Of a stretch of DNA of 64,000 nt, positions 1 to 19,900 are shown in pieces. Below the pieces are notes generated by a model. That model had not been told where the DNA came from. It made no database searches and worked only from the letters and a program-made list of their open reading frames with translations. How positions within the stretch are numbered: position 1 is the stretch's first letter; every line of letters starts with the position of its first letter. This stretch comes from Macrostomum hystrix. Lineage: Eukaryota > Animalia > Platyhelminthes. Location of the stretch: the NCBI GenBank assembly GCA_950097015.1, contig CATNEN010000029.1, forward strand, positions 1,736,001-1,800,000. The letters run 5' to 3'. Both the position numbers and the translations under genes were made by a program.

Positions 1-405
1 AGACACTGGAACCATGAGATACTGCAACCATGAAACACTGGAACCATGAAACACTGGAACCATGAGGCACTGGAACCATTAGACACTGGAACCATGAGAC
101 ACTGGAAACATGAGATACTGGAACCATGAGACACTGTAACCATTAGACACTGGAACCATGAGACACTGTAACCATTAGACACTGGAACCATGAGACACTG
201 TAACCATTAGAACTGGAACCATGAGACACTGTAACCATTAGACACTGGAGAGATCAGAGACGGGAGTGCTGTGATTGGAGAGTACATTCGAGAGATGAGA
301 CATGGGATTAAGAGGCAAGCAAGAAATCAGATAGGGTAGAGAATGTGTTGAAAGGAGCTCCGAGGGCCGCATCTGGTCCAGTTGCCAGAGATTTGACAAC
401 CCATG
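1..405 (+). mobile_element. Right part of a degenerate hAT (Charlie/SPIN-like) MITE containing a 16-bp minisatellite (AGACACTGGAACCATG, 1-248)
   Basis: GAGCTCCGAGGGCCGCATCTGGTCC at ~355-380 is nearly identical to the right end of the intact MITE at 32638-33408; a decayed TIR (GATTTGACAACCCATG) ends at ~405. Confidence 0.7.
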
Positions 406-444
406 TCTAATGGTGCCCCAAAAAGAGCAAAGCAGCCCTCGCAC

Positions 445-1202
445 CTTCTGAGATTGCCGGCCAAGGCGCTGTCGGCTTCAGGCACACCCAGCTGCAGGCC
501 AATCCGATGCCAGTGCCGGGCATAGGCAGCCAATTGCGGGCTGTCCGGGCCCTCATTGTCAATGCAGCGAATGCCAAAGAGGCGTCTGTGCAGCAAGGCG
601 TAAGCAACAAATGCAGTCTGCACTGTGCGCATATCATCTGTGTTAAACACTGGGACGCCAACCACTGAGTTAGCCGCGTGAGTGTGCGCTCGACGAACAG
701 CAATACTGGACTGGCCAGCCTGACAGGCGGCGTTTGCCGGATCTCCCAAATGCCAGGCGATCACGTGACGTGCGGTGGAAACGTAGCGACGCAGCGCTTT
801 AATTGGCTGATCGGATCGGCCCGTTGCTGCCAGAACAGAAGACAGCGGAGCGAGCGATAAGCCAGTCATGAGGGAGAACAGTAGAGCGGCCATGCAGGAG
901 GCAAAGTTATCCGCCAGTAAGTGAGTCGCTGCGCGTTGGTCGGCCTCAGATAGTTGACTTAGCTCTGGGATTTTAGTAGGCTTGCCGTCTTCCGTCGAAG
1001 TGCTGAGTTGCCGAGCTTCATCAAATGGATTCTTATGGACATTATTACCTTCTGCTGAAGTGCTAGGTTGCCGAGCTTCATCAAATGGATTATCATGGAC
1101 ATTATTACCTTCCGTTGAAGTGCTACGTTGCCGAGCTTCATCAAAGGGATTCTCATGGACATTGTTGCCTTCCGTTGAAGTACTCTGTTGTCGAGGAAAC
1201 AT
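445..1202 (-). CDS. First coding exon of an MPAB/Lcp (DUF2236, ER-bound/rubber oxygenase catalytic domain) family protein; the gene continues left of the window
   Basis: aaaATG at 1202. Motifs TGRS..KALRRYVSTARHVIAWH, VRRAH, DDMRTVQTAF and HWHRIGLQLGV follow the pattern I recognise from animal DUF2236 proteins. Donor AAG|GTGCGA at 445/444. Confidence 0.75.
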
Positions 1203-1455
1203 TTTATATTAAGCGAAAGACATTTTTTTTAATACCGAGTAACAGCAATTTTGTTAATGCTTTTTAACGTTTTATTTCAATCGCAGTAGCGTCAATGATG
1301 CGGAAGAGCGAATGCACGTTTAACTGAAAAGCAGACGAGAAAACTTTATTATTATATTATTCCACATCACTAGCAAATGAGGATTTAAATTATGATCTAC
1401 TATTATTATGATTTTTTACTAGCCTATAAGCGAAGATGCAAAACGGAAGCTATAA

Positions 1456-1597
1456 CAATGTTCGCGAATCACGGGGTGAGCTAGCAGATATGCGCACGCT
1501 AGATCACACGTTAAATACGCGGAGATTATTCTACCTGCCATTTTCTCTGTCAATCACTTTATTTATAATTACAGTGTGACAGCAAGTGGGCAGGTGG
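1456..1597 (-). ncRNA. Box H/ACA snoRNA, diverged paralog (copy C)
   Basis: Hairpin CCTGCC/GGCAGG + CTGTCA/TGACAG; H box AGAATA (1527-1532); hairpin CGCG + GTGA.CTAGC/GCTAG.TCAC; ACA at 1459-1461. Both boxes lie 14-15 nt from the pocket tops, and pocket sequences are identical to copies A and B. Confidence 0.8.
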
Positions 1598-2764
1598 TTA
1601 TTCTATCGACCCCACACTCTAATTATAAGTACAAGATCAAACCAAATGTAACAGAAACCGATAAAAACGTATCCTTTTCATTGGAAAATGACTTCTAATT
1701 AATTTTTGAGCAGAAGATCCGAAAAATGCTTTTTTACTAATAAACCAACCTTTTTTGCTTACAAAACAACAAACAGGAAATAATGAAACACTTTACTTAG
1801 CAACTAAATCTTAAAAGTTTTAAGTTTATCGTGCTTGCAGTGTTTTTCAGAGAAACTTTCAGCTACGTGTATTTAGGATTAGCAAAATAAATATTAGTCA
1901 AGCCGGATGTACATGAACTATTGCGGAAATGAAGCTAACGCTCTATAGGTATCGAGTCTTAGCAGTATAAACAACAAAAAGCGAATTGCAATTTCAACGA
2001 CTAATCATACACAGTACAGAACCTACTATCTCCATAAGTGGAATGACCCTAATCATAAAGTGAATTAAAAATAAAGATAAAAATACAACTAATAGAAAAA
2101 TCTGTCAGCTAAAATGAACAGATAAAACAATACAAAAATTCCAGCTATCAAATGTTGAGTTCAAAGAATGTGTGCGACTTAATTGATTGGTTTCAATCAA
2201 CGTCACACAGAGTAGCACTAGTGTAGCAACGAGATAGTAAGTTAAATTCATCTTTAATTCATTTAAACGAAAGAGAGACAAAAAACTGACAAAGAAAGAA
2301 GTAAACAACGAAGCAGGGGTAGGTGAAAGCAAACATGTACAAGCTGGTATGTAGTAAATAATATGCAGAGGACACAACAACGCGTTATATATTGCCTCAT
2401 CGGGAGAGTCATTTTAGGTTTGTTAGAGATGATAAAAAGTCTGTAAACTAAAGAACAAACATGCTTTAAACTGTAAAGCAACAAACTAGCAAATAAGCGG
2501 TTATAAAGCAGATAGTTAAAAACAAGAACAATATGCGGCAGGCAAAATAACAAATTAGAAATGATAATTAAATCAGACCATTGGCAAAATGACTTGGCAG
2601 AGGTATCAGTATTTAATAACTACAAGCTAATAACAGGGTTAAGATTCTACAGAAAACTCTAAATAAGGAAATGATTGTCCAAGAAGCCTGCGGACTTTCT
2701 ACTTCAGTTAGAAATAAGAATGATGTCAACTGATTGATAATACAATTACGTTTTATATTTCTAT

Positions 2765-5700
2765 CTATCTTTTTCTGCGAGTAGACTTCTGAAATTTCCG
2801 CTGCGGATTAAATATATTTTCGCCGGCCTGTGGTTGAAGCAGTGGCTGTTGTGTGGTGAATGAAAAAGTAGGAATCGTCTGCTGTGGCTGCGGCTGACCA
2901 GTGAATGCAAAGCTGGGAGCCGCCGGCGGTTGTAACTGTGCCGGCGGCTGAGCTGGCATGCCAAAGCTAGGCGCAGATGGCTGCTGCGTTTGCTGGTGAG
3001 TGGAAAAGCTAAAGCTTGGCATTGCCTGTTGCTTACTTAAAAAGCCAAAGCTTGGCGCACCCGGTGTCTGTTGAGTTGACAGGCCAAAGCTTGGTGCACC
3101 TGATGTCTGTTGGGTTGACAGGCCAAAGCTTGGTGCACCCGATGTCTTTTGGGTTGACAGGCCAAAGCTTGGTGCACCCGATGTCTGTTGGGTTGACAGG
3201 CCAAAGCTTGGCGCACCCGGTGTCTGTTGAGTTGACAGGCCAAAGCTTGGTGCACCCGATGTCTGTTGGGTTGACAGGCCAAAGCTTGGTGCACCCGATG
3301 TCTGTTGGGTTGACAGGCCAAAGCTTGGTGCACCCGATGTCTGTTGGGTTGACAGGCCAAAGCTTGGTGCACCCGATGTCTGTTGGGTTGACAGGCCAAA
3401 GCTTGGTGCACCCGATGTCTGTTGGGTCGACAGGCCAAAGCTTGGTGCACCCGATGTCTGTTGGGTTGACAGGCCAAAGCTTGGTGCACCCAGAGTCTGT
3501 TGGGTTGACAGGCCAAAGCTTGGTGGACCCAGAGTCTGTTGGGTTGACAGGCCAAAGCTTGGTGCACCCAGAGTCTGTTGGGTTGACAGGCCAAAGCTTG
3601 GCACACCAGATGGCTGAGGCTTCTGTTGGTTTGCAAGGCCAAAGTTTGGCCCAGCAGATGGTTGAGACTGCTGTTGGTTTGACAGGCCAAAGCTTGGCCC
3701 AGCAGATGAGTGAGACTGCTGCTGTTGCTGGTTAAAAGCAAAGTTAATGCCTGAAAGAGATTGCGGTTGTTGGTCTAAGAAAGACGAACCAGCAGCCGAA
3801 GAAGTTTGCTGCGGACGGTTTTCAGACGAACCGGTAGAAAAGAGACTTGTTGGAGCAGTCGTTTGCTGCTGCTGACCTGAAAAAGAGAAACTGGTTGTTG
3901 CTGCTGCTTTAGCGCCCAATGAGACAAGAGAGCCTGGTGCGGATGGCACTTTACTGTCTGAGTTCAACAGCTGCGACTGCTGCTGCACCTGTTGGCCAAC
4001 ACGGCTAAAAAGAGAGCCGGAGCCGGCTGAAGCGGAACTTTTCTCTGAAGTTTGAACCATAGGCATGAAAGAGAAGGCAGCAGCAGTCTTCTGTTGCTGG
4101 GCTGGCTGTTGATTTTGCTGTTGCGAGCTCTGTTTGGATTGCGATTGTGTCTGACCGGAGCTAAAACTAAAAAGACCAAAACCACCTGATGAGGACGCTG
4201 ATGCAGTGGAAGCTACGTTTGTTTGAGACGGTGTTATGTTAGCGACAGTCGATACTACCGGTGCTTGAGTGAGACCGGAGCCGAATGGCTGATTAACAGT
4301 GGATGAAGTAGTCGCAGCGGAAGACGAGGGAACTGATTGCGTTGTAGCCGTGTGAGCCGCCGTAGTCTGTTTAAACAAGGTAGCACCAAAGAGCACAGCC
4401 CCGGCTGGGGTTCCGCTGGCGGAGGTGACATGTGGAGCGTCAGACTGGTTGAACAGGCTCCCACCACTGGCTGGCGTAGAGCTAGTTGACGAGATAGTCG
4501 GGCCGCCACCAAAGCCACCAAATGTAAACGATGATTTACTTCCGGAGATTGCTGATTCGGGCACGGAAGGTGCAGCAGAGGCGGCAGTCGTTGTTGCTGC
4601 TAATAAAGAGGGTTCAGTAACCATCGTACCAGCTTTGAAGTTAAACAGGGAAGCTACAGTGGCGGGTGTTTGACTAGTCAGATCAGGCGGTGGTGTTGGT
4701 TTTTCACTATGAGAGCCGCTATTGGCAGTGGCAGCGGTGGCGCCCACGCCGGAGGAGTTGTTGCCGACGCCTTGAAATTTGAAACCACCAAGATTTGTCT
4801 CACTGGTACTGGCTGCCGACTGGAACAGCGACGGCAAATGAGGGCTTCCTGACTGCGCAGTTGTGGTTGTACTAACGGCACTAGCCGAGGAAGCAGTTAC
4901 CATGCTAGCTGAGGCACTAACAGAGAGCGATGAGGCGCTCGTCACTGAGCTAGGCGGCTGGATGCTTGGGAAAGCTGAGAAACCAGCCAGAGAGGAGCCA
5001 ATAGTTTGCGGTGGCTGCGTCAATTTCGCCTGACCACTAGTAGTAAAATAATTTGCCGACTTTTCAATGGCAGCAGATGACTGAGTGAAAGAGGGCAATG
5101 AAAATGCTGGACCATCTTTTGCTAGGTTTGATAGGCCGTCTGCGAAAGACTTTGCTGCCTGGCTGAGTGTTGTGGGCACGGGGATTTGCTTAACGGGAGC
5201 GGCCGATGCAGTCGAAGATGCAGGTTTGGACACAGGTGAATTCAATAAAGTTTGGCCAAAAAATGAAGGAAGTGGAGCAGCTGCAGCATTTGAAGAAGGC
5301 CCTGTTTTAGTGGTCGCCGTAGGGGCTGCTAGCGACTGCAAGCTCACAGACGGCGTTGATTGCCCAGTAGGCAGAGAAGCTGATACTGGTGCTGTTGTCG
5401 GCTGGTTGGTGGCAGGTTTCGGAGGAGTTGCTGTTGACACGGAACTGCCCGTTGTTAAAGCGGCCGCTGGAGGCTGCTGGAGAAGCGAAATTAGCGGCGC
5501 GGTGGAAGCAGCCGAGCCTATTTTAGGTGTTGAGAGGGCAGGCGCTGGAGCCAGTGCAGTCGAGGAAGCGGCGCAGGTGGAGACAGAGGCTGTCTGTGCT
5601 ATGTTGCTCAGCAGTCGCCTGATGCGATCGCGTCGAGTCTCTCGGACCTGGCGCTCGCGTTGGCGCGCCTGCCGCTGAGCCACAAGACGGGACGTAGGGC

Positions 5701-6931
5701 TCTCTGCCTGGGCTGTTGCCATGCCAGTCAGAGACGTGTCATTTAGCAGGCGCCTGTACTGCTGCTGCCTCTCAGAGCGTTCTAGACTGGCTACTAGGGC
5801 TGTGACGGTCATTCTGGGCCGCTGCGGCGACTGACGGGGCGAAGTTAATGAACGTGACGCCGAAGGCGGTCTTACCACCGAATGATTTTGTAATGGGGTA
5901 GGCGACGAAGAAAGTGACATTACCGATGGGCCTTCGTTAAGCGCATTCACAGAGGCAATATGGTTATTAGCGGCTTCGCTTGGTATTGACGCAGCTGGCT
6001 GAGATTGCGACACGGAAATGTCAGTTTGGCAGGACTCGGATCGGCTGCTAACGCGAATTGCACCTGCGTTGCTTAAGATGGACGACACAGGCAGCAGGCC
6101 GGCAGAAGGCGAAATTGACATAAGGCTTGGCGATTGCTGCTCCACAGGTGTCACTATCGCCAATGGCATTGCCAGCTGATGACGCGGTGTAGGAGGACCT
6201 GTCTTAGCGTTGTCAGGCAGTACCTCGCTCAGCGACGTCGCTTTAAATGTTTCATCGCTAAACCGACGCCGCTTAGAATCTCGACGACGCTTGTGATTTT
6301 TTAGGTGATCTGGAGTCGGCGGATCCGACGACGCAGCCACTCCGCTGTCTACACCAGCAGACTCATTGTCGCTACAGTCAAGATCGACATCGGCGTCGTC
6401 GCTGAGCAGTTCGCCGGCATTAGCTGTGACGGCTTCGGCAGTTGATTCGGCCGGAGTCGTCGCGGAAGAAGGCGACGAAGAAGTCATTTGTGAGGCGCTA
6501 CGCTTGCGCGATTCGAGGATGCGCAGGCCGCGCAAGACGCTTTCGCGTTCGTCTAAATCGCGCGCTAAAGCGAAATTGGCGCCAGTAAACGCGGAGGCAC
6601 CGCTGCTACTGGCGCTAGAAGGCAAAAGTTGGCGACGGCGGTGGTCAAACGTGCCGGGCGCCTGTCGGACAGTCAGTACTGATGATGCAAGCGGGGGTGG
6701 CGGCGGCGGTGGTGGCAGAAGCCTCCGTTGCTGAAGCTCGTCGTTATAATTATTATTGGACATTGGACTGCCGACGGGCGCTGGTGGAACGAGTAAGCGT
6801 ACGCCGCTGCCGCCATTGGAACTGGTAGGTATCCCCGGCACACCGGGAGATGCCCCGGCCAATGCTGCAGCGGCAGCCGCATCGGCTGACCGCTTCGAGA
6901 AGCTGTAGTAGCCTTTAGCGTGACGGCGCAG
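2765..6931 (-). CDS. POM121/Nup153-like FG-repeat nucleoporin, one large exon
   Basis: Open frame from the acceptor at 6932 to TAG at 2765. Ser/Thr/Gln-rich with many FG/FSF/SFG motifs; basic NLS-like segments (RKRS, KRRRDSKRRRF); basic C-terminus RKFQKSTRRKR. No RanBP2 zinc fingers and no TM helix are visible. Confidence 0.8.
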   Translation of the reverse strand: MRRHAKGYYSFSKRSADAAAAAALAGASPGVPGIPTSSNGGSGVRLLVPPAPVGSPMSNNNYNDELQQRRLLPPPPPPPPLASSVLTVRQAPGTFDHRRRQLLPSSASSSGASAFTGANFALARDLDERESVLRGLRILESRKRSASQMTSSSPSSATTPAESTAEAVTANAGELLSDDADVDLDCSDNESAGVDSGVAASSDPPTPDHLKNHKRRRDSKRRRFSDETFKATSLSEVLPDNAKTGPPTPRHQLAMPLAIVTPVEQQSPSLMSISPSAGLLPVSSILSNAGAIRVSSRSESCQTDISVSQSQPAASIPSEAANNHIASVNALNEGPSVMSLSSSPTPLQNHSVVRPPSASRSLTSPRQSPQRPRMTVTALVASLERSERQQQYRRLLNDTSLTGMATAQAESPTSRLVAQRQARQRERQVRETRRDRIRRLLSNIAQTASVSTCAASSTALAPAPALSTPKIGSAASTAPLISLLQQPPAAALTTGSSVSTATPPKPATNQPTTAPVSASLPTGQSTPSVSLQSLAAPTATTKTGPSSNAAAAPLPSFFGQTLLNSPVSKPASSTASAAPVKQIPVPTTLSQAAKSFADGLSNLAKDGPAFSLPSFTQSSAAIEKSANYFTTSGQAKLTQPPQTIGSSLAGFSAFPSIQPPSSVTSASSLSVSASASMVTASSASAVSTTTTAQSGSPHLPSLFQSAASTSETNLGGFKFQGVGNNSSGVGATAATANSGSHSEKPTPPPDLTSQTPATVASLFNFKAGTMVTEPSLLAATTTAASAAPSVPESAISGSKSSFTFGGFGGGPTISSTSSTPASGGSLFNQSDAPHVTSASGTPAGAVLFGATLFKQTTAAHTATTQSVPSSSAATTSSTVNQPFGSGLTQAPVVSTVANITPSQTNVASTASASSSGGFGLFSFSSGQTQSQSKQSSQQQNQQPAQQQKTAAAFSFMPMVQTSEKSSASAGSGSLFSRVGQQVQQQSQLLNSDSKVPSAPGSLVSLGAKAAATTSFSFSGQQQQTTAPTSLFSTGSSENRPQQTSSAAGSSFLDQQPQSLSGINFAFNQQQQQSHSSAGPSFGLSNQQQSQPSAGPNFGLANQQKPQPSGVPSFGLSTQQTLGAPSFGLSTQQTLGPPSFGLSTQQTLGAPSFGLSTQQTSGAPSFGLSTQQTSGAPSFGLSTQQTSGAPSFGLSTQQTSGAPSFGLSTQQTSGAPSFGLSTQQTSGAPSFGLSTQQTPGAPSFGLSTQQTSGAPSFGLSTQKTSGAPSFGLSTQQTSGAPSFGLSTQQTPGAPSFGFLSKQQAMPSFSFSTHQQTQQPSAPSFGMPAQPPAQLQPPAAPSFAFTGQPQPQQTIPTFSFTTQQPLLQPQAGENIFNPQRKFQKSTRRKR
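3040..3700 (-). repeat. Coding 39-bp tandem repeat (PSFGLSTQQTSGA, ~14-17 units) forming the FG domain
   Basis: Unit GACAGGCCAAAGCTTGGTGCACCCGATGTCTGTTGGGTT on the + strand. Confidence 0.95.
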
Positions 6932-7157
6932 CTGAAATTAATAAAAAAAGTTTTTAAGTAGGCGAGAGGAATTTTTCTCCAGATCCGAACACAGACTGAA
7001 TGCAACAACTATAAGGCTAAAAAAAGACAAAAGACAACGAAAGGGGCACATGATCCACAGATGTGCACCGCAGTTTCAATCCAATGCCCTAGTTGTTAAG
7101 AACAAACAGGCAACAGGCAAAGTGGCAATGAAGACTAGCCACTATTCCTGGTCAAAA

Positions 7158-7163
7158 TTTATT
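7158..7163 (-). terminator. Likely RPS3 polyadenylation signal AATAAA
   Basis: TTTATT on the + strand, ~125 nt downstream of the RPS3 stop, followed by U/GU-rich sequence. Confidence 0.6.
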
Positions 7164-7288
7164 TTATCTCATGCCTTCTCGACGCTTTTAATGCACGCGC
7201 ATCTGCTTACGCCAGAACTGGCAACTAAACAAAAGCGATTCAATGTTCGCGTCGCATCCCAATCCGAATAGTTAGAATATGATCAAAT

Positions 7289-8411
7289 CTAGGCCGGCGC
7301 CGTGATTTCAGCCTGCGGCTTCTGCTGCTTATTCTCCGAATATGGCTGCGCCGGCACCGTCTGCTCCTTAGGATCGGCGATGGTCACGTGATCGGGTAGC
7401 GGCTTCCTCGAGGGGCCACCACCGGCGGGGGCCTCCCAGTTCTGCATGATCTTCACCTGGATGCCGAGCACGCCCTGACGCAGCTGGACGTGTCGCACGG
7501 CCCGATCGATAAAGCGAATCGACGGCTCACCGCTGTGGATCATGAAGCCTTCGGTGAACTTCATCGATTTGGCGCGCTGGCCACGCAGCTTGCCGCTGAC
7601 GATGACTTCGGCGCCCTTGGCGCCAGACTCGATGATGAATCGCAAGACGCCGTAGCAGGCGCGACGGACAGCGAGGCCACCGAGCAGCTTGTAGCGCAGA
7701 GACTCGGCCTGGAAGGTGGCGCGTTCGAAAAAAATTTTAGATAGCGGCTGAATAGGATTACAGGATGATTAACAGCTGATTACGGGATGATTAACAGATG
7801 ATTACAGGATGAAAAATAGCTGATAACAGGATGACTGACAACTGATTACAGGATGACTGACAACTGATTACAGGATGACAAATAGCTGATTAAAGGATGA
7901 CTGACAACTGATTACAGGATTACTGATAGCTGATTACAAGATGACTGACAGCTGATTACAGGACGAACGATAACTGACTTCAGAATGGAATAGAGTAAGA
8001 GAGTTCTCTGTTTATTACAGGATGGAAGGGCAAGTGAGAGAGCTCTGTCAAAGTGAAAAAACCACTTAAAAGCAATGCGAAAAATTTTTACCGACTTACC
8101 TGAGCAACGGCGGACAGTCCGCGATTGGCCATCTTCTCAGCGTAGATCTCAATCTGGCCATCCTCGAAGCCGAATCGTTTTTGAAGCACGGCGGTGAGCT
8201 CGCGCACCTTGCGGCCCTTCTCGCCAAGCACACTCTGCGTGCGGGTGGCCAGCACAATCACCTCGATCTTGGCCGGGGTGACGCGCAGCTCGATGCCAGA
8301 GTAGCCATCTTCGGCCAGTTCGCGCTTGAGGAATTCGTCTAGCTCGGCGCGGAAGACGCCATTCGCTACAAATGCGCGCTTCTTGCTAGTTACAGCATTT
8401 TTAGTTGCCAT
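7289..8411 (-). CDS. RPS3: 40S ribosomal protein S3 (uS3), 243 aa; exons 8411-8100 and 7708-7289
   Basis: [31 protein letters not shown]...RGLSAVAQ|[24 protein letters not shown]; canonical GT-AG phase-0 intron 8099-7709. Confidence 0.98.
7756..7978. repeat. ~22-23 bp minisatellite in the RPS3 intron
   Basis: GCTGATTACAGGATGACTGACAA units, ~10 copies. Confidence 0.85.
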
Positions 8412-8485
8412 GGTGCTACTGGTGCGGCTGCGGAATTAGAAGCGAAATTGAGAAATATTGAGTCATCTTACTACTACAACATTAA

Positions 8486-8647
8486 AACTGTCTGTGTGTC
8501 ACGGGGTGAAATCAGGATAGGAGCAAAGTTTATTTGAACACTGATTCACACGTTAAACACACTATACAGATGCTCTACCTGTTAAAATCTCTGAAATCAG
8601 CTCTGCAAGCTGTAATATGCTTAGCTGGTTCAGCAAGTGAACAGGCA
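8486..8647 (-). ncRNA. Box H/ACA snoRNA (copy A)
   Basis: Hairpin 1 CCTGTT/AACAGG + CTGAA/TTCAG; H box AGAGCA (8571-8576); hairpin 2 GTGTGT/ACACAC + GTGAATCAG/CTGATTTCAC; ACA at 8489-8491; 14-15 nt pocket-to-box spacing. Confidence 0.8.
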
Positions 8648-8713
8648 TCTAAATCATAAAATATAAATATTAAACTTGATTGATAGGCTAGAAGCAGCTC
8701 TTTTGTCAGTTGC

Positions 8714-8875
8714 TTTTGTCTGTGTGTCACGGGGTGAAATCAGGATAAGAGCAAACTTAATTTGAACACTGATTCACACGTTAAACACACAGTACAGATG
8801 CTCTACCTGTTAAAATCTCTGAAATCAGCTCTATAAGCTATAATATGCTTAGCTGGTTCAGCAAGTGAACAGGCA
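8714..8875 (-). ncRNA. Box H/ACA snoRNA (copy B, tandem duplicate of A)
   Basis: Nearly identical to copy A, with differences only in the apical regions and hinge; H box 8799-8804, ACA 8717-8719. Confidence 0.8.
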
Positions 8876-8934
8876 TCTAAATTATAAATAAGTAAAACAC
8901 TAAATACAACAGAAAAATATAATCTAATGGGCAT

Positions 8935-9297
8935 TATAATAATAATAATTGCAGGAGAACTGCGGGCAGTGGTACATCATTTAGTTACACTTGACCTGCA
9001 GCCAGTGAGGAGGCAATTCTGCCCATTTTGCCAACTCCTGAGCACACAAGCACACAGATACTCTACGCAGGCATAAGCTCACACAGGTGTGTACATCTGC
9101 CCTGACTTTCTCATTGTCAGGCAGTGTACATTTCACTGTGCCTTGGAGGTTGGCCCTCAAGGGCGTAAATTGCATGACAAGCCCCCAAGCCTTCTCTCCG
9201 CGGCTGGACCCTAAATAAATGTGGCCTCACTGTGGAATCAAACTTAGTGACCATGGTGCGAGAGGCAAACACAATAACCGCTCTGCCACTGACCCTC
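8935..9297 (-). mobile_element. tRNA-derived SINE, family 1
   Basis: Reverse complement aligns with 18647-18955 (A box TGGCAGAGCGG, degenerate B box, internal CCTGAC/GTCAGG hairpin); (ATT)n tail. Confidence 0.75.
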
Positions 9298-9493
9298 TAT
9301 ATGAAAATGTTTGTAAGACTAAAAAAATACAAACAAATACTATATAATCCAATTAATAACTTTTAATAACTTCTTATGCGATAATTATACTCAGTTATAA
9401 AAACTAAGTCTATAGTTGCTTTATTTGTGTTTGTGATAAGATACTAATATATTGCTATTATGTCAAGTTGCCATTTTGATATGGACACTGGCT

Positions 9494-10157
9494 CCCATAG
9501 TCCAGATCATGTAGTGCATGCCAGAATTTTCTGGCGTGCGTTTTTTTAATTTGGAGTGCAGTGGCATGCAAACAGAAAAATTGGCATGTAATAGTAGGGG
9601 CTCTGCATGGCATGGTGTGCGGGTGTGTTACTGGTGTGAAAGAACATTATAGATTACATGACATTTTGTGTTCATGTTTGCATTACCTGTATCCTTTTAA
9701 TTTGAAATTTTGCTTTTTTTACTATTGCTTTTAATGTTCTTACAAATTGTAAAAAATTGTTGTAACAATTTTTTTCTTTTGCACTTTATCTTTTTAATAT
9801 TTGCTTTGCTGTAATGCTTTTTTTCATTTTTAAATTTGAACAAATTGCTTAGGAATTGGTCTATAGGCATAGCTTTAGGTAGGAGTGTTTGGATATATAT
9901 GGATATCCGTATTAATATGGTTAGGTATTGATGTACATATATAGACATGTATAGGTATCAATGTTATTTGGGAAGGGTATTAGCAAAATTAAAAATGAAA
10001 CCCAAATCCAAATTAGAATCAATCTCTAATTAATGGGGTTTACATCAATTAATCATGTGTATTTTTGGCGTGCAGTAGAAGTTTTGTGGATTGCTTCTGC
10101 TTGCTATTAGTATGCAAAAAATTTCTGGAGTGCACCCAGCATGATCCAGACTATAGG
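9494..10157. mobile_element. Putative MITE with ~40-bp imperfect TIRs and a 6-bp flanking direct repeat
   Basis: Left CCCATAGTCCAGATCATG..TGCATGCCAGAATTTT versus right-end reverse complement CCTATAGTCTGGATCATG..TGCACTCCAGAAATTT; CTGGCT at 9488-9493 and 10158-10163. Confidence 0.65.
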
Positions 10158-12148
10158 CTGGCTTTTACAAAAAAGCCTTACAGTAAAATCTGACCTTTGC
10201 CTAAGATCAAAAAAGGCAAGGACATGTATACAAATTACAAGCTTACTGTTTAGGCAATGCTTAGAATCCAAAATTGTAAGATGTGTACAATGCCAACATC
10301 AAGGAGATAATCAAATTATATAGGCCTAGCTATATTTGATTTTTTCTCCATCAAAGATGCAATAAAAATCTAACAAGTAATCAAAGTTGTCAAAGGCTAA
10401 TATCATTATTATTATTACACATAATAATAGGTAATAGGCCCTAGGTAATATAATTAATAACAATTATGTTATTATTACTATTATCTAGCTAACATATTAA
10501 GCAACTCTGGCTACTATACCCCTATGACTATGACTGTTACGAGGTACGCAGGCCCTATAACACTATTGGCAATAGCATAGAGCAATGTTTGTGTTTTGCC
10601 TTAGTTCATAAGCCTACCAGGCTAAATCAATATCTTAGACTATATTTTCTTATTCCTGGATATTAATATCAATAGGCCTAGGCAATAGTCAAGACTCAAG
10701 ATCACGCTTTGAGCATACTAGAAGCAAACCTATCTAAGAAAAATACAAAAAAAAGTTTAAGCTTTTAAGGAACTTCAAAAATGTCTAATAGGCACTGGTC
10801 TTGTACGTCAGTTTAGAAGAATTTCATTTGTGCTCTAGTAGTTGGGCCTAAACTTAAACTGATGATTTGGTGCACAACACATTGATACACTAGTTGTCCT
10901 GATGTGTTCTGGAAATTTCCCATGTACACAACATGATTCTGAGTGTTGGGCCTAGGCTACTACTAGAAGGACAATGTTAATGATTTTTTTGATTGTCGAA
11001 CTTGGAATTTTAGACAGGCATATAATAGTTTTTCTTTTTAGTATACATGAAATTTAGTTATCACATAAAACCTTTATCACATAATTGGTGTTAAAACTAC
11101 AATGTCAAAAAAAGCTCTTAAAGCTGTCATTAATGGTAGCTTGTAAAATGTAGTCATAAATGTCATGTGTTCTATTACATTAATTAAGGCTTAAGCCTTT
11201 GTTTAAGCATTGTTTAACTCATTCTTCGAGATTAAGTAACCACAAAAGTAATAGTGTACACTTATTAGGATATACGAAAATACAATCCATCAATCACTTT
11301 ACTATAGCCAAAATATATTTGTAATTTTTTAAGTGTTTATTCGCTTGAAAAGAATCGGTAAAGTCACTCAAAAAGTCTGCGTGCAGAATTAATCTGTGCG
11401 AGAAAGTCGTGACTTAGGCCACATTAGACAAGTTAGTAACTAATTCCGTGAAAAAATTAAAATAAAACAACGCTTTAAATTAGCAAGTGCTTTATTGGCA
11501 TTTAGAAATTTTTGCGCTAAAAGCAGCGTAATATATATTTTAAATCTAAATTTCTAGTAAAAAAGCTTAATGCATAAAAAATTTTTATTACAATTGGCCA
11601 CGCAATTTCGCAGCAAGGACCACTACTAGAAGATATTCTAGAACTTGCACTTTTATTCTAGAAGAACTTCTTCTAGTGATCCTTAGTTCGCAGTTAGTAA
11701 TAAATTTACGAAGTACCACGCACTATAAGAAGAATACTTCTTCGCTTTAGTTATTCTCTCGATCAAGTCTTCTGATCTTCGTACTAACGATACGATGACT
11801 AATCTATTTTTCGCGAAAATGCTGACATGTTCTCAAAGAAGGTAACGGCAGAATTTTTGCAACAGTTCTAAAAAATTGATTATATTTTTCACGATATTTT
11901 TGTGACAAAAAAACATGGCTTAAAACATGTGCAAAAGTATACTTTGAGTATGACTATTTCTAATGGTATTCAAATAACCAAATAAGACTTTATCATTACT
12001 TGAAATTATTTTTTTTCTTATTATTCACGTCAGAATTTGCAAACAGCAACATGTGTACTTATGTATATTTGCTTCGCATGATTATCTGGCGTACCTGCGT
12101 ATTTTAAGCAAACGAGACCAGTTTAAAATTATTTAGCCAGCACTGGTG

Positions 12149-12644
12149 CTACTGACAGTGCGCAATGTTCTGACTGAGAAGTAGACGGTATGGCAGACGA
12201 TGCATTTTTGGAATGTGTACAGGATTGGACTGTCCCGCAGAAGACGATCCCGCAGAAGACGCACACACGACAAAAGGCAGCTCAATGTTTGCACCCGCGT
12301 CTATTGAAACAGACGAAGAGTCGTCGCTGTCACTTGACGAAAGGATTGCATTTGCTGCCTCTGTAGTTGTCGGTTTACGCTTGCATGCCTACTGGCTGCT
12401 GAACACATTTGCCACAGTATTGACAGTAGGACAAATCTGGATTGGATCCATCCCGACGTAACCGGATGATCTTCCATTACAGTCTTCACCTTGATTTCAT
12501 ACGAAGCCGTCCATTGCGGGTCGTCGAACCTCTGGTATAGTGCTCCAATCAAAACTCGAAACGAAGTCTGAATGATTTGCAATAAAGTGCCTTACAACAT
12601 TCTTCTTTCGAAATCGACGCTTTGCAGACTGGGCACGTATCCAT
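12149..12644 (-). pseudogene. Decayed ORF with an N-terminal C2H2/BED-like zinc finger (pseudogene or transposon relic)
   Basis: gaaATG, then MDTCPVCKASISK / frameshift / KNVVRHFIANH, then a protein-like frame with two in-frame stops. Confidence 0.35.
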
Positions 12645-13971
12645 TTCGATGGTTATTATTTAATTTCGCTGTTGCAGACTGCTTACAGACTGCCTATAAC
12701 AGAAGAAATTTTACACCGATTTGTAAGCGAGCACGCTCGGCTTCTGACTCAAAGTACTATCGTGACCCGTACGACCGTTTAATCACTTAAACTATCATTC
12801 AAGGTTTGTCTATGGTGAAATAGCATAACATCAAACTCACAATAAATTTAAAGTTGCTATATTGTCTACTAATAGTAGAGTAGGTAGTTTCGAACAGAAT
12901 ATGAGCATAAACACGAAAAAAAATTTGATTTCAGCTGATTTATGTCCACTATTTCTATCTGTATGTTGAGAAAGCACTGCTGTACTTATGCAACATTACT
13001 TGAGACAACTACCTTAGATCAAACATCATCAAACAACCTTAAAAGAGTATATTCACAAAAGTACTTGAAGACTGCATGGTATATTGATAAATGATTAATA
13101 TTAGTATTTGTTAGGCAAGTGTTACACGCGCCGGATCCGCACGATGGCGTTACAAAACAATTGGCAACAAATGAAGTAAAAGATCGCGTGGCCCACTACA
13201 CAAAATATTGGATATTTTATCGTATTAATTTACTTATTGCTGCCTTCATAGAAGCCTCCTCCAGGTATGCCAGATCCGTTGGCAGCTTCGGTGCGTCCAG
13301 GAGGTCGTCTGACGCGACTGGCGGACGTTGGTGTGTTAGCCGCCAAATTAAAATCAGGATAAGAAGCCGAAGCCAGCTGCGTTGGGCCAATACGAAACTG
13401 CTGCAGACCCATAGCCGCAATGTAGACGTCGGTTAATGACAAGCTTGCATGAGTCGTTTCCGCTGTCAAAATTCGCATTTTGTGTTTTAAATGATAGGGA
13501 TTTTATTTATAAGATATTTTCGATAGTAACCCTGCTAATATTAACTAGCCAACTATTACGGAATCTAACAGAGATATTTTTACTTTTTACTGCGTTTTAA
13601 ACGTTACGCCGATAGCGCGCAAATTTAACAAGTAATATTTTAAACTTCTTAAATAAAATCGGAAGTTATAATAATATATCATTATGTCAGCAACGCTCAG
13701 GAAGTTGCAGACACCATAGTTATAAATTTAAGGGTTCATTAAGACGGGATTAACATATAGGAGAAAGTAACTTCTCTGGATAGCTGGTTGCAACACTTTC
13801 TTTTCGGTTTTCTAAGAGCTCTGGTCCAAGATTTCTTTAAGTGTGAGCTAATTGTCTTTGATAAATAAATAAATATCTCTTTTATATTTTTACAGGCTTC
13901 GATAAGACATAAGACCTAATTCTTATGGTTCGTGCATAAATAGCTGAATCCGGCAGATTGCTGCCTTTGTC

Positions 13972-16900
13972 ATGGGGTGTTTCAGTGGAAAAAAGAATAT
14001 CACTGAAAAGCCTGACCAATCAAAAAATATTGAGAAAAAACTCGAAAAAGAAAGAAAAGATTACAAATCAACGCATAGGCTTCTTTTGTTAGGTATGGCA
14101 TACCTTGAATATTTAATATTCTACATGTTCATATTTAGTTAAATAAAGCACTTAGTGAATTCTTTCGTTCCTAGTTCATAAAAAATAATTACTTGTAACA
14201 AACAATATGTGATTAAGTTGCTCAATAATTCTAATAAAATTATGGCTATAATTTATTCTTACATAGATAACCAAGCATTTCTGTTAGTTTTGCTTTCATA
14301 CTAGTTAATTTGTTTGTATTCAGGATTGTGCTTTGGACACTTTAGTTAGGAAAATTAGGTTAGTAACAAGCCACAATTATATATTTTGCTTTTGCAAACT
14401 GTCTATTCAAAATCCAATAAAGTAAACAGGATACTATATATTTTTAGGTTTATTGCTTGGTTAATTTGCATATAGATATTTATTAATCAATAAATTTAAA
14501 TAAACTCTGACTTTTAGAACATTTATCTATATATATAAAAGTGAAAACTCTGTCTGTGTGTGTGCAACCTTTTGTCTTTATAGATGCCGAAACCGCTCAA
14601 CCAAATCGCACCAAACTTTGCACATACCTAAAACCACCTACGCTGAGTGCAATAGGCTACTCAAATTCCCGAAAAATCATTTCCTTCCTGCTCAAAAGTG
14701 CAAAAAACTGCTCAAAAATCGTCAAAAAATCACTCAATATAGTGTATACTTCTAATACTTAGTATGCCTATCTAGGTACTATTTATAAGTAAATTTACTT
14801 TACTTAAATTACTTTACATAGCTATTTAAATATGTAGCTATTAAAATACATATTTTCTCTTTACCTAGAAATGTCCTCAAGCAGCAGTTTTGTTGTATGT
14901 TTGTGTATACTAGCTTAATAATATAACATATAATATATAAGGATATATATACCATAGAAGCTAGTATTCAAGCTACTTTTCATAAATACAAAGTAAAAGC
15001 TATCTATTTTTTTAGTTTAAATTAGTTTTTTTAAACTAACAAAGAGAAAAAGTTAATATTTTTCTTGCAATCAAGAACACATTGGCAACAAAACCACATC
15101 TTTTTATTTCTATAGCCTTATATTGATTCTTAGTATATTGTATATGCTGACTAAATCATAAAATTTTGAGCTATAAACTGGCTAGAAGCTAGCTAAGATT
15201 AAAAAACTGTTAATTTCCCTTAAGAATTCATTTTAACATCATTAGTCAAACCCTTCTAAAGTCAGTTTTAATACCAAACCAGACAATAATGTTTAATATA
15301 AAATGTAAAAACTAATTTTCAAAAAGTGCTACATATTTGAGAATGACAAAAATATTCAATATTTGGTTTTTTAGAAAACATATACAACTTTGTATGCTTG
15401 AATTTTAGGTTACCCAATTGCTTGCTAGTTTTTTACTTAGTATGATTGGGTAACCATACTACAATTTGGATTATTTTTAATCAAATGTTAAAAAAAATCC
15501 ATTCAGTACTTTTCATACCCACCTAACCACAGTAAAATTGTTGTTCTTTACTTGAGTTTTGTGTCTTATTTTGTAAAGCAAATTTGTAGCTAAACGTAAA
15601 TAATTTTCTTGCTGTTTTACTAATTATAAAATCTGTCAAAATTCTAAGCTGAAAAGTACTATTTAGCTAAGTTGTTAAAACATGACCAGAACTCATGCTT
15701 GTTTGAGCTGGAGCTACTTTAAGCATAAAAATATTCATGTCAATGTACTGTTTTTTAGCATGTCTTGAAAAGCTTCAAATGGATGATAACTCTTTTTATT
15801 GATAAGATTTTACCTAATATAGAATTTATATCTAAAGAGACTAAATATCTACACTACACCAAGTTATTTCTAGAATTAAGAATAATTGCTTTATCTATGT
15901 TGATGTAAACGACTTTCACATTTTAAATCATCTATTTTGAATTTTGTTTGATCCATATTACTTTTATTTTGACATATTAGGTGCTGGAGAGTCAGGCAAG
16001 AGTACCATTGTTAAACAGATGCGCATTCTGCACATCAATGGCTTCAGTCCTGAGTAAGTAAAAGTAGCCAGTACACATAGCTATTAATTAGAGAAAAAGA
16101 TATGGAAATAATGAGATTTGTAAGAACTTAAGACTGCTTCTCATAGCTATTGTGGATTCAAGTTAATTTAACCAGATATTCAGAATTGACACAAATGAGA
16201 TAATTGCATTCTAAATAAACAGAGAAAAACGCCAGAAGATTATGGACATTAAGAAGAACATCCGGGATGCGATCCTATCTATTACCGGCGCCATGGGCAA
16301 TATTAGTCCGCCGGTCGTGCTGGAGCACCACGACTACGAGGAGTACATCAATTATTTGCAAAACGAAGCGCCCAGACCAGATTTCGATTATCCGCCGGAG
16401 TTCTTTCAATACACTATCAAACTCTGGAACGACGCCGGTGTTCGAGCCTCGTTTGAACGGTCCAACGAGTATCAGCTGATTGATTGTGCTAAATAGTGAG
16501 CAGCTCACGATTTTTCTATTTAATTGGAGGTGTTAGAGGGCCACATGGCCACATTTAGCTGATTCACACCAACATTGCATCAGCATAACTAATGACCGAA
16601 CAATATGACCCAGGTATAACTAATGACCGAACAATATGACCCAGGCATAACTAATGACCGAACAATATGACCCAGGCATAACTAATGACCGAACAATATG
16701 ACCCAGGCATAACTAATGACCGAAAAATATGACCCAGGTATAACTAATGACGAACAATATGAACCAGGCATAACTTATGACCGAACAATATGACCCAGGT
16801 ATAACTAATGACGAACAATATGACCCAAGCATAACTAATGACCGAACAATATGACCCAGGTATTCGTAATAACATAACAATATGACCCAGGTGTTAGTAA

Positions 16901-19900
16901 TGACCGAAATATATGACCCGGGTATAACTAATGACGAACAATATGACCCAGGTGTTAGTAATGACGAACAATATGACCCAGGTATAACTAATGACCGAAC
17001 AATATGACCCAGGTATAACTAATGACCGAACAATATGACCCAGGTATAACTAATGACCGAACAATATGACCCAGGCATAACTAATGACCGAACAATATGA
17101 CCCAGGTATAACTTATGACCGAACAATATGACCCAGGTATAACTAATGACGAACAATATGAACCAGGCATAACTAATGACCGAACAATATGGCTTAGAAA
17201 TCTTGATGACACAAGTTGATGATTGAGCACTTTAAGTTATTATTGTAGGGAAATGATATGTGCATTCATTACCTTATACTCTTATTTAAGTTTTACTAGT
17301 AAATTTGCGCTTCACGCGTTCCTTAGAGATTTTCTCAAAATATCCTATTTTTCTGCTCGAATCAGCCATTTTTACCTTTTTACTTATCAAAGCCAGCTTA
17401 TCAGCTTGCTCGCTTGTCCAAATTCTCCTATCCCTACCTTGCCCACCTGCCTACTCCTGTTATTATAGTTTTATTATTGATTAAAAACGAAGGCTGGTCA
17501 TTTCTGCTAAATCGAGATCTCAAAACGGCTGTCCTAATTATTACCTGGGAACACCTAATCAACCTAATCAGTTTATTTAGGCTGACAAAAAGCGGACACT
17601 TTTGGACAGTCTAGCTGACAGTCGCAGGCGAGCTGCCGCGTACTCATATTTTTGTTCCTCTTTTGTACAAAATATTCTTCATCCCAGTTCGATTTCACAA
17701 GCAGCTCCTGTGTCAGATGGCGCGAGCGCCAGAGGCACTGTGGGGGAGGGCCGGCTAGGTGGCTGGGTGACAGGATTTAGTCTTCGCGAATTCTCCCTTT
17801 CTTTCTCTCTCTCTCATTCTCTAGTTTTTCTCCCCAGTCTCGGGTGTCGAAGACTTCGCCCCAGGGCAATTCTTTCACGAGTGGGAGTGAGGGGGAGGGA
17901 TGCACCGTCTGAAGCATCTAGAAGGGCAAGAGCCTCGCTATTCTCCCCAACCGACTTTCTTCCACACCAGCCCGCCTCCTCCCATCGTATCTGACGGCAG
18001 TCTCGCCCTCTCGCCGGCTTTGACGCGATGCGCGCAGTTTAGAAATCTGGCCGTTGTACGGTGTGTTACAGCCTGTCTGGCGTTACCATCCTCACCCGCT
18101 GCCCCTGATGCCTCCCCGCCAGTCATTTCTCCCCGCGCTCTCCGTGTGCCTCATCTAACAGGCTTAAGCCGGCCCCCCTCCCGTTCCCTGTCCCCTCTGC
18201 CCACCCCACCTTGTGCTGGATCTTCTCTAGTCCGCTTCCTCCTTCTACTCCTTACCTAATGTCCCGCCGGGCCTTGCTTTTTCTGTCCGCGGACTTCTAG
18301 GAATGGGGTTATAAAGAATTGGACCGCTATTAAGCCTTTCCACTCTGGCCCTGTTGGGATTTTGCTCTAGCGGCCCCGATTGGGTGCGTGGTCCCAGTCT
18401 TCCCTATCACACACTTTCTCCCTCACAATACGCACGCGCACACCTTTTGTCGATTCTACGGCGATCCGCCTTATGTGTGTTTGTGTGCGCTGACACCTAG
18501 GATCTCCATTTTTGGCTCATTTTCTGCCATTAAGCCTAACAAGACGCCATTTTTTCGCCTCGTCCTTATTTGTTTTCTTAGCATTGGTATCTGTAGTTTT
18601 GACTAGAGAGAGTCAAAGAAAACAGCACGAATTAATGCTCTTTTGTGAGGGTGTATGGCAGAGCGGTCTAACGTGTTGGCCTCCCCACAAAGGTTCCTGA
18701 GTTCGATTCCGCGGCGAGGCCACATTCGTTTGCGGTGCAGCTGCGCAGAGAAGGCTTGAGGGCTTGTCGTGCAATTTAAGCCGTTGAGGGCCAACCTCCA
18801 AGGCACAGTCAGAGTGTACACTGCCTGACGATGAGAAAGTCAGGGCGGATGTACACACCTGTGTGAGCGTGTGCCTGCGTACAGTATCTGTGTGCGTGTG
18901 TGCTCAAGAGTCAGCGGAATTGGCAGAATTGCCTCGTCACATGTGCAGCCAGCTATTCTATGTGTGTGCCTGAGATTCGAACTCCCGACCTTTCGGTCAG
19001 AATTCAGTTAGAAAGTTCTAATCACTGGGCAGTGATTAGGACTAGGAGCGGATTAGGACTGCCTATTTTTTTCCTAGTGCTAAAGCCGGCCGACTATCAG
19101 TCCGAGGAGGTGTGCAAGCACGATATGGGATTGGGAGGACTCTTAAATGGCTAACTAATCCCATTTGTACTTTTTTGCGCGGTTGTGAATAAGCACGCGC
19201 ACACTATTCTCTCTCTCCAGTCTAAATACTTTGTCCAGCCTTTATTCTTTCAGTTCACGCCTCCTAGCCATGTGTATAGCCTTATATACTATCTACCAAA
19301 CTCATATTAGTTGTATGTCTATTATCATTCTTATATATTGGGTCACGACTTGAAAGTCGGCGGTTCGATTCCCGATTCAACGGGAACAATTTGCGTCCTT
19401 TAGCAATACACTTCACTCGGCATTGCTTCAGTTCACCCAGCTGTTAAATGTGTACCAGCGTTTGCTGGAGATATTCAGGGTGGGTTTGGCGCCCCCCCAG
19501 TCCATGGACATTTGGACTAACAGGACTAATTTGTAATTATCTAACTTATTGCTATAAGAGATCTAACAGAAAACTCATCTAAAAGTCCTCAATAAATCGG
19601 TTGACTTTAGTGCGATTCAAATTATTCTATTAACTTTCACTACGCTGTTAAATCATAGTTTTTCTTTTTACTTAGCTTCAAAATATACTAGTTTTTGTTT
19701 TACTTTTAATTTCTATTGGTTTTCATTTAGTTTAGAATTGGTTTCCAGTTGCAAACTTTCACGCCATTCAGTTTGGCCTTCTTTTCTTTGCATTCTCTTG
19801 CTATTAATTCTCGGGAGAAAATTTAATCAAGCTTTCACAGGCTTTGCTTAACTACTAAGTCACTATGTTAGCCGCGCTGCTAGCCCTCCAAATCATTTGC

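Follow-up and report, generated by a model that had tools for sequence, protein, structure and literature searches.

A probable box H/ACA snoRNA family with two paralog lineages in the flatworm genus Macrostomum

Canonical eukaryotic box H/ACA snoRNAs are guides bound by dyskerin/Cbf5, built as hairpin, H box, hairpin and ACA, with two pockets that each lie 14 nt from a box. The Macrostomum family described here resembles them in this layout, in size (142-177 nt), in having stems that covary around fixed guide strands, and in its placement in non-coding DNA directly upstream of the splice acceptor of a housekeeping gene. It differs in matching no Rfam family, in having one pocket without an rRNA or snRNA target, and in a host segment that is possibly an outron instead of a cis-intron. 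(Outrons are the 5' segments of pre-mRNAs that are discarded by spliced-leader trans-splicing.) A second system for comparison is trypanosomatid SLA1, likewise an H/ACA guide in an organism with spliced-leader trans-splicing. SLA1, however, pseudouridylates the SL RNA, and an SLA1-like role was rejected here, as neither pocket is complementary to the M. hystrix SL RNA gene. A full-text literature search returned no paper devoted to Macrostomum snoRNAs.

The window, meaning the whole 64-kb stretch of Macrostomum hystrix DNA that was analysed, positions 1736001-1800000 of contig C29, contains three copies of the element, called A, B and C. Copy C is very probably a functional box H/ACA snoRNA gene and one of two ancient paralog lineages in a Macrostomum-specific family, judging from sequence comparison within and between species. 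This adds to the flatworms a well-supported, unannotated H/ACA snoRNA family, of an ordinary kind within a well-known class. The parts of copy C, from the predicted 5' end of the RNA, are as follows.

1456-1597, minus strand: copy C, whole predicted H/ACA snoRNA, 142 nt (129.9 bits with covariance model R1)
1589-1594, minus strand: hairpin 1 lower stem, 5' arm CCTGCC (partner GGCAGG at 1534-1539)
1583-1588, minus strand: pocket 1, 5' strand CACTTG, invariant in every copy as well as the M. lignano relic
1577-1582, minus strand: hairpin 1 upper stem, 5' arm CTGTCA (partner TGACAG at 1547-1552)
1540-1546, minus strand: pocket 1, 3' strand AGAAAAT, with conservation limited to AGA
1527-1532, minus strand: H box AGAATA (ANANNA), with the top of pocket 1 lying 14 nt upstream
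1514-1521, minus strand: hairpin 2 lower stem, 5' arm CGCGTATT (partner GATTCGCG at 1463-1470)
1508-1513, minus strand: pocket 2, 5' strand TAACGT, invariant
1498-1507, minus strand: hairpin 2 upper stem, 5' arm GTGATCTAGC (partner GCTAGCTCAC at 1476-1485)
1471-1475, minus strand: pocket 2, 3' strand CCCGT, invariant, with the pocket top 14 nt from ACA
1459-1461, minus strand: ACA box, followed by TTG (3 nt) to the predicted 3' end

Read on the minus strand, copy C thus runs from hairpin 1 through the H box and hairpin 2 to ACA and the last 3 nt; the hairpins are joined by a single-stranded hinge that carries the ANANNA H box, and the stems of hairpin 2 include CGCG/CGCG (lower) and CTAGC/GCTAG (upper). 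In every intact copy ACA falls 1-2 nt past the lower stem, and 3 nt then remain to the predicted end (A, B, C and the intact M. lignano copies). The distance from pocket top to box is 14 nt for both pockets of copy C, against a range of 14-16 nt for the class, and by our own count on the sequences pocket 2 is also 14 nt from ACA in A/B and in M. lignano. The H box itself varies within its pattern (AGAATA in C, AGAGCA in A/B, AGACTA in M. lignano, all ANANNA). Folded alone, copy C gives the two hairpins at -41.7 kcal/mol (z = -3.9), a stability that none of 200 shuffled sequences reaches, and copy A gives the same fold.

The other two copies stand in tandem, about 7 kb from copy C.

8486-8648, minus strand: copy A, 163 nt
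8714-8876, minus strand: copy B, 163 nt, 93% identical to copy A

Copies A and B have 11 differences, which are confined to apical loops, linker and tail and spare the stems, pockets and boxes; the probability that 11 differences would all miss the roughly 88 constrained bases is about 1e-4. A preliminary description had presented copy C as a diverged third copy. The third copy and its distance of some 7 kb from A and B are confirmed, but C is no stray: it is a paralog with conserved orthologs, being 78% identical to the M. lignano copies and only 53% identical to A and B. The matched stem changes listed in that description do recur when A/B and C are aligned on the minus strand, with CCTGTT/AACAGG becoming CCTGCC/GGCAGG and CTGAA/TTCAG becoming CTGTCA/TGACAG in hairpin 1, and with GTGTG/CACAC becoming CGCG/CGCG and ATCAG/CTGAT becoming CTAGC/GCTAG in hairpin 2. 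In exact register these amount to 2 or 3 double-changed pairs per stem, with a register shift of one position in 2 of the stems. The strands said to be conserved, CACTTG, AGA, TTTAACGTGTGA and TCACCCCGTGA, are kept, as are the H box pattern and ACA; the neighboring GTGA/TCAC, in contrast, is helix and not pocket strand. Its A-U pair is replaced by G-C in M. lignano (GTGG/CCAC), and since such a swap marks the segment as helix, pocket 2 consists only of TAACGT / CCCGT.

Covariation was assessed on five sequences, A, B, C and two M. lignano copies, which represent three independent lineages only. The RNAalifold consensus has 35 pairs, of which 10 show changes on both sides. Paired cells make up 91.4% over the consensus pairs, and the covariation score is 0.32 against a shuffle mean of 0.205; not one of 500 shuffles reaches either value. 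Controls in which the partner strand is slid out of register are 29-44% paired and score 0.05-0.14. Individual stems display the pattern well. In the lower stem of hairpin 1, two pairs that are U-A in A/B are C-G in C and M. lignano, and the upper stem of the same hairpin has double changes in 3 pairs. In the lower stem of hairpin 2 one pair is G-C, G-U and A-U in the three lineages. Several pairs of the consensus follow the classic path from G-C (A/B) through G-U (M. lignano) to A-U (C). Selection on RNA structure, as proposed from the stems of the window alone, is therefore borne out by the matched changes in the five-sequence set. The family reads as a clean small example of RNA-level selection (stems covary, guide strands are frozen, loops drift), and the predicted RNA has all the sequence-level hallmarks of a box H/ACA snoRNA, compensatory substitution among them. 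As for the strand, 18 of the paired cells are G-U on the minus-strand reading and would be A-C mismatches on the plus strand; these cells, together with the positions of the boxes, identify the RNA strand as minus. All three flanking genes are also encoded on the minus strand.

Rfam was scanned with the whole 64-kb window, with positions 1-12000 and, under lax filters, with the individual copies; no family reached the gathering score. The best H/ACA match, SNORA71 on copy A, scores 16.8 bits where the cut-off is 60, and copy C has no H/ACA match at E values up to 10. Such a covariance scan had been suggested as a check on the H/ACA reading; it names no family for the copies, SNORA73/U17 included. 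The family is either lineage-specific or diverged beyond recognition.

The locus is conserved in Macrostomum lignano. Contig L013 (NIVC01001130.1) has, on one strand, RPS3, a 1127-aa FG-repeat protein and an MpaB-like gene in the same order as in M. hystrix; both L013 and a second contig, L044, share this order and carry C-type copies (58-65 bits with R1), and L044 has three of them at a spacing of 419 nt.

L013:16216-16392 and L013:17390-17566: M. lignano C-type copies just upstream of the MpaB-like gene, 177 nt, 65 bits (R1)
L044:8782-8958 and L044:9201-9377: altered M. lignano copies, in which ATA replaces ACA and a C-to-A substitution disrupts one pair of an upper stem
L013:7864-7969 and L044:520-625: A/B-type relic upstream of M. 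lignano RPS3, 106 nt, 23.5 bits for the L013 relic

Because of the loss of ACA and the stem-breaking change, two of the L044 copies look inactive, and they are probably dead duplicates. When the M. hystrix and M. lignano loci are compared by blastn, nothing but the snoRNA aligns in the stretch from the FG-repeat gene to the MpaB-like gene. The higher identity of copy C to the M. lignano copies (78%, against 53% to A/B) makes it the orthologous conserved lineage, and places the split between A/B and C before the split between the species. The relic points the same way for the other lineage. By eye, 20 of 21 bases match copy A over TTCACTTGCTGA-CCAGCTA; the first 20 or so bases of hairpin 1 are kept, while the H box and hairpin 2 are lost. 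The relics of L013 and L044 occupy the same position and differ at only two bases. The common ancestor therefore had an RPS3-linked paralog, which has since decayed in M. lignano. The fates of the paralogs differ between the species: M. hystrix keeps both lineages, and M. lignano has lost the RPS3-linked one and amplified the C type. (Between the two C-type copies of L013 lies a terminal-inverted-repeat element some 780 bp long, L013:16600-17385.)

If expressed as predicted, the minus-strand RNA would form the series hairpin, H box, hairpin, ACA and would be expected to assemble with dyskerin, Nop10, Nhp2 and Gar1, its two internal loops serving as pseudouridylation pockets. Candidate targets were sought among RNAs taken from the organism's own genome: 18S, 28S and the spacers of the rDNA, U1, U2, U4, U5, U6 and the SL RNA gene. 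The rDNA units of M. hystrix each include an SL RNA gene and a U1 snRNA gene, just downstream of 28S and on the same strand, an arrangement that repeats about every 11.6 kb on contigs C15, C17 and C42. One unit on contig C15 is laid out as follows.

9725-9755: SL RNA
10067-10229: U1
12246-16002: 28S
17242-19054: 18S

Pocket 1 (CACUUG / AGA) most plausibly guides 18S U303 (AUCU-UU-CAAGUG), with which it can form 9-10 bp, divided into arms of 6 bp and 3-4 bp. This uridine is the top pocket 1 match for all three guide variants; 6-22% of shuffled guides match as well, so the pairing can be proposed only tentatively. Fly U301, in GAUCU-U-U-CAAAUG, the target that gives Drosophila snoRNA:Psi18S-301 its name, would be the homolog of M. 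hystrix U303 (AUCU-U-U-CAAGUG) and serves as a lead only; full-text literature searches for that snoRNA name found nothing. The yeast 18S site Psi302 (snR49) was also considered as an equivalent and dropped, as it presumably lies about 13 nt upstream of the U303 counterpart, at M. hystrix U290. The fly Psi-seq paper has 228 sites in 18S, too many for a fly site to be diagnostic for U303.

The eight copies known from the two species all have the same pocket 2, which presents a concrete substrate-hunting problem. Among 18S, 5.8S, 28S, ITS, 5' ETS, U1, U2, U4, U5, U6 and SL RNA, no canonical target scores above the expectation from shuffled guides; the best match, 18S U365 with 5+3 bp, is below the shuffled-guide mean. 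A genome-wide pattern search for the ideal pocket 2 site gives 0 exact matches. Allowing one mismatch gives 24 single-copy sites, of which 20 were scanned with Rfam and none belongs to a known family. In 28S, the 3' strand of the pocket has a perfect 7-nt match (2862-2868) and the 5' strand a 9-bp match (2880-2888); the two are 11 nt apart, an arrangement that is non-canonical.

Every copy shares the strand of the genes and lies about 60-400 nt upstream of the next gene start or acceptor-like AG, the C type upstream of an MpaB/DUF2236-like gene and the A/B type upstream of RPS3.

327-1202, minus strand: MpaB-like ORF downstream of copy C, ATG at 1202, with a weak MpaB/DUF2236 domain
1324-1325, minus strand: AG of a polypyrimidine acceptor-like site (cttttcag), presumably used, 131 nt past copy C and before the MpaB-like ORF
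8428-8429, minus strand: acceptor-like AG, 57 nt downstream of the 3' end of copy A, preceding the RPS3 ATG at 8409-8411

In the protein collection the MpaB-like ORF has a single relative, BOX15_Mlig022926g1 of M. lignano (72% identity). (Its N-terminus consists in part of three 60-nt, or 20-aa, repeats with NPF-like motifs at 989-1195. At the RPS3 gene, a 22-nt tandem repeat at 7734-8019 separates two blocks that align with M. lignano, and is probably intronic.) The RNA is probably processed out of an intron or outron of its host pre-mRNA, ahead of an acceptor for 3' splicing or trans-splicing; the alternative is a promoter of its own. The flanks of the copies have no common motif beyond AT-richness, and the repeat unit of A/B extends only about 12 nt upstream of the RNA, which together argue weakly against a dedicated promoter. 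Acceptor-like sites 57 nt past copy A and 131 nt past copy C make release from an outron or a 5' intron plausible. A bolder proposal is that both lineages are released from outrons or operon spacers rather than cis-introns and that pocket 2 guides a substrate outside rRNA, snRNA and SL RNA; taken together we hold this to be possible but rather doubtful. Should it be true, a trans-splicing animal would be making snoRNAs from outrons, a biogenesis route that is undescribed (a full-text literature search, judged by title and abstract, gave no paper about an outron-hosted snoRNA), and host segments that are outrons would make this a locus that links snoRNA production to trans-splicing.

An element that folds this well invites two explanations in which it has no role as a stable RNA. 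A transposon of the foldback or miniature type, or a DNA palindrome that has survived by chance, would account for the good folding of copy C on both strands (the plus strand has z = -5.0) and might be suspected from the terminal-inverted-repeat element between two of the M. lignano copies. The preliminary description had itself named a high-copy foldback family as the finding that would overturn it. The M. hystrix assembly comprises 220,453,370 bases in 42 contigs (PMC10468722). A BLAST search of this 220-Mb genome with copy A as query matched only A and B; a genome search with covariance model R1, built from copies A, B and C, matched only A, B and C among the best 150 first-look candidates that it scored, a depth at which very diverged copies could be missed. 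Three copies among these candidates rule out a high-copy foldback transposon. With syntenic positions across species inside otherwise unalignable DNA, G-U pairs that favor one strand, and conserved boxes, an origin as mobile or chance palindromic DNA is extremely improbable. Somewhat less remote, and still very unlikely, is a structured cis-element of the host pre-mRNA, one that regulates, for example, the use of a trans-splice acceptor. The constant location of the copies shortly upstream of a gene start or acceptor-like AG, on the coding strand, is what such an element would show. It would, however, have no use for H and ACA boxes, for their exact spacing or for invariant loop strands. Tandem arrays of 2-3 copies are easier to explain by gene dosage than by a signal in cis, and the element is carried by two unrelated genes.

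The rival with the most in its favor keeps the RNA within the H/ACA class, but not as a guide of rRNA pseudouridylation: it would be an orphan, a guide for mRNA or ncRNA, or a chaperone like snR30/U17 that binds pre-rRNA by its invariant loop strands. An invariant pocket 2 with no canonical rRNA, snRNA or SL RNA target among those tested agrees with this, as do a pocket 1 target that is not significant alone and the two 28S matches 11 nt apart. Those matches, however, lie in what is by our own reading an apparently variable region, and have a chance probability of roughly 0.06. Both pockets follow the 14-nt rule of modification guides, and there is no Rfam match to SNORA73/U17 or any other H/ACA family. 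We regard this rival as unlikely, and a modification guide with pocket 1 directed at 18S is the preferred reading of the family.

The window has several other features. A 16-nt tandem repeat occupies its start (1-260). Inverted repeats of about 125 nt, 84-90% complementary, are found 9.4 kb apart at 9005-9258 and 18686-18940; the first arm partly matches scattered sites of the M. lignano locus, so these are probably the ends of a mobile element. A weak U8-like match at 10805-10943 on the plus strand (22.4 bits, E 1.6) includes UGAUGAUU, a C-box-like motif, and a terminal CUGA, and may represent a C/D box snoRNA.
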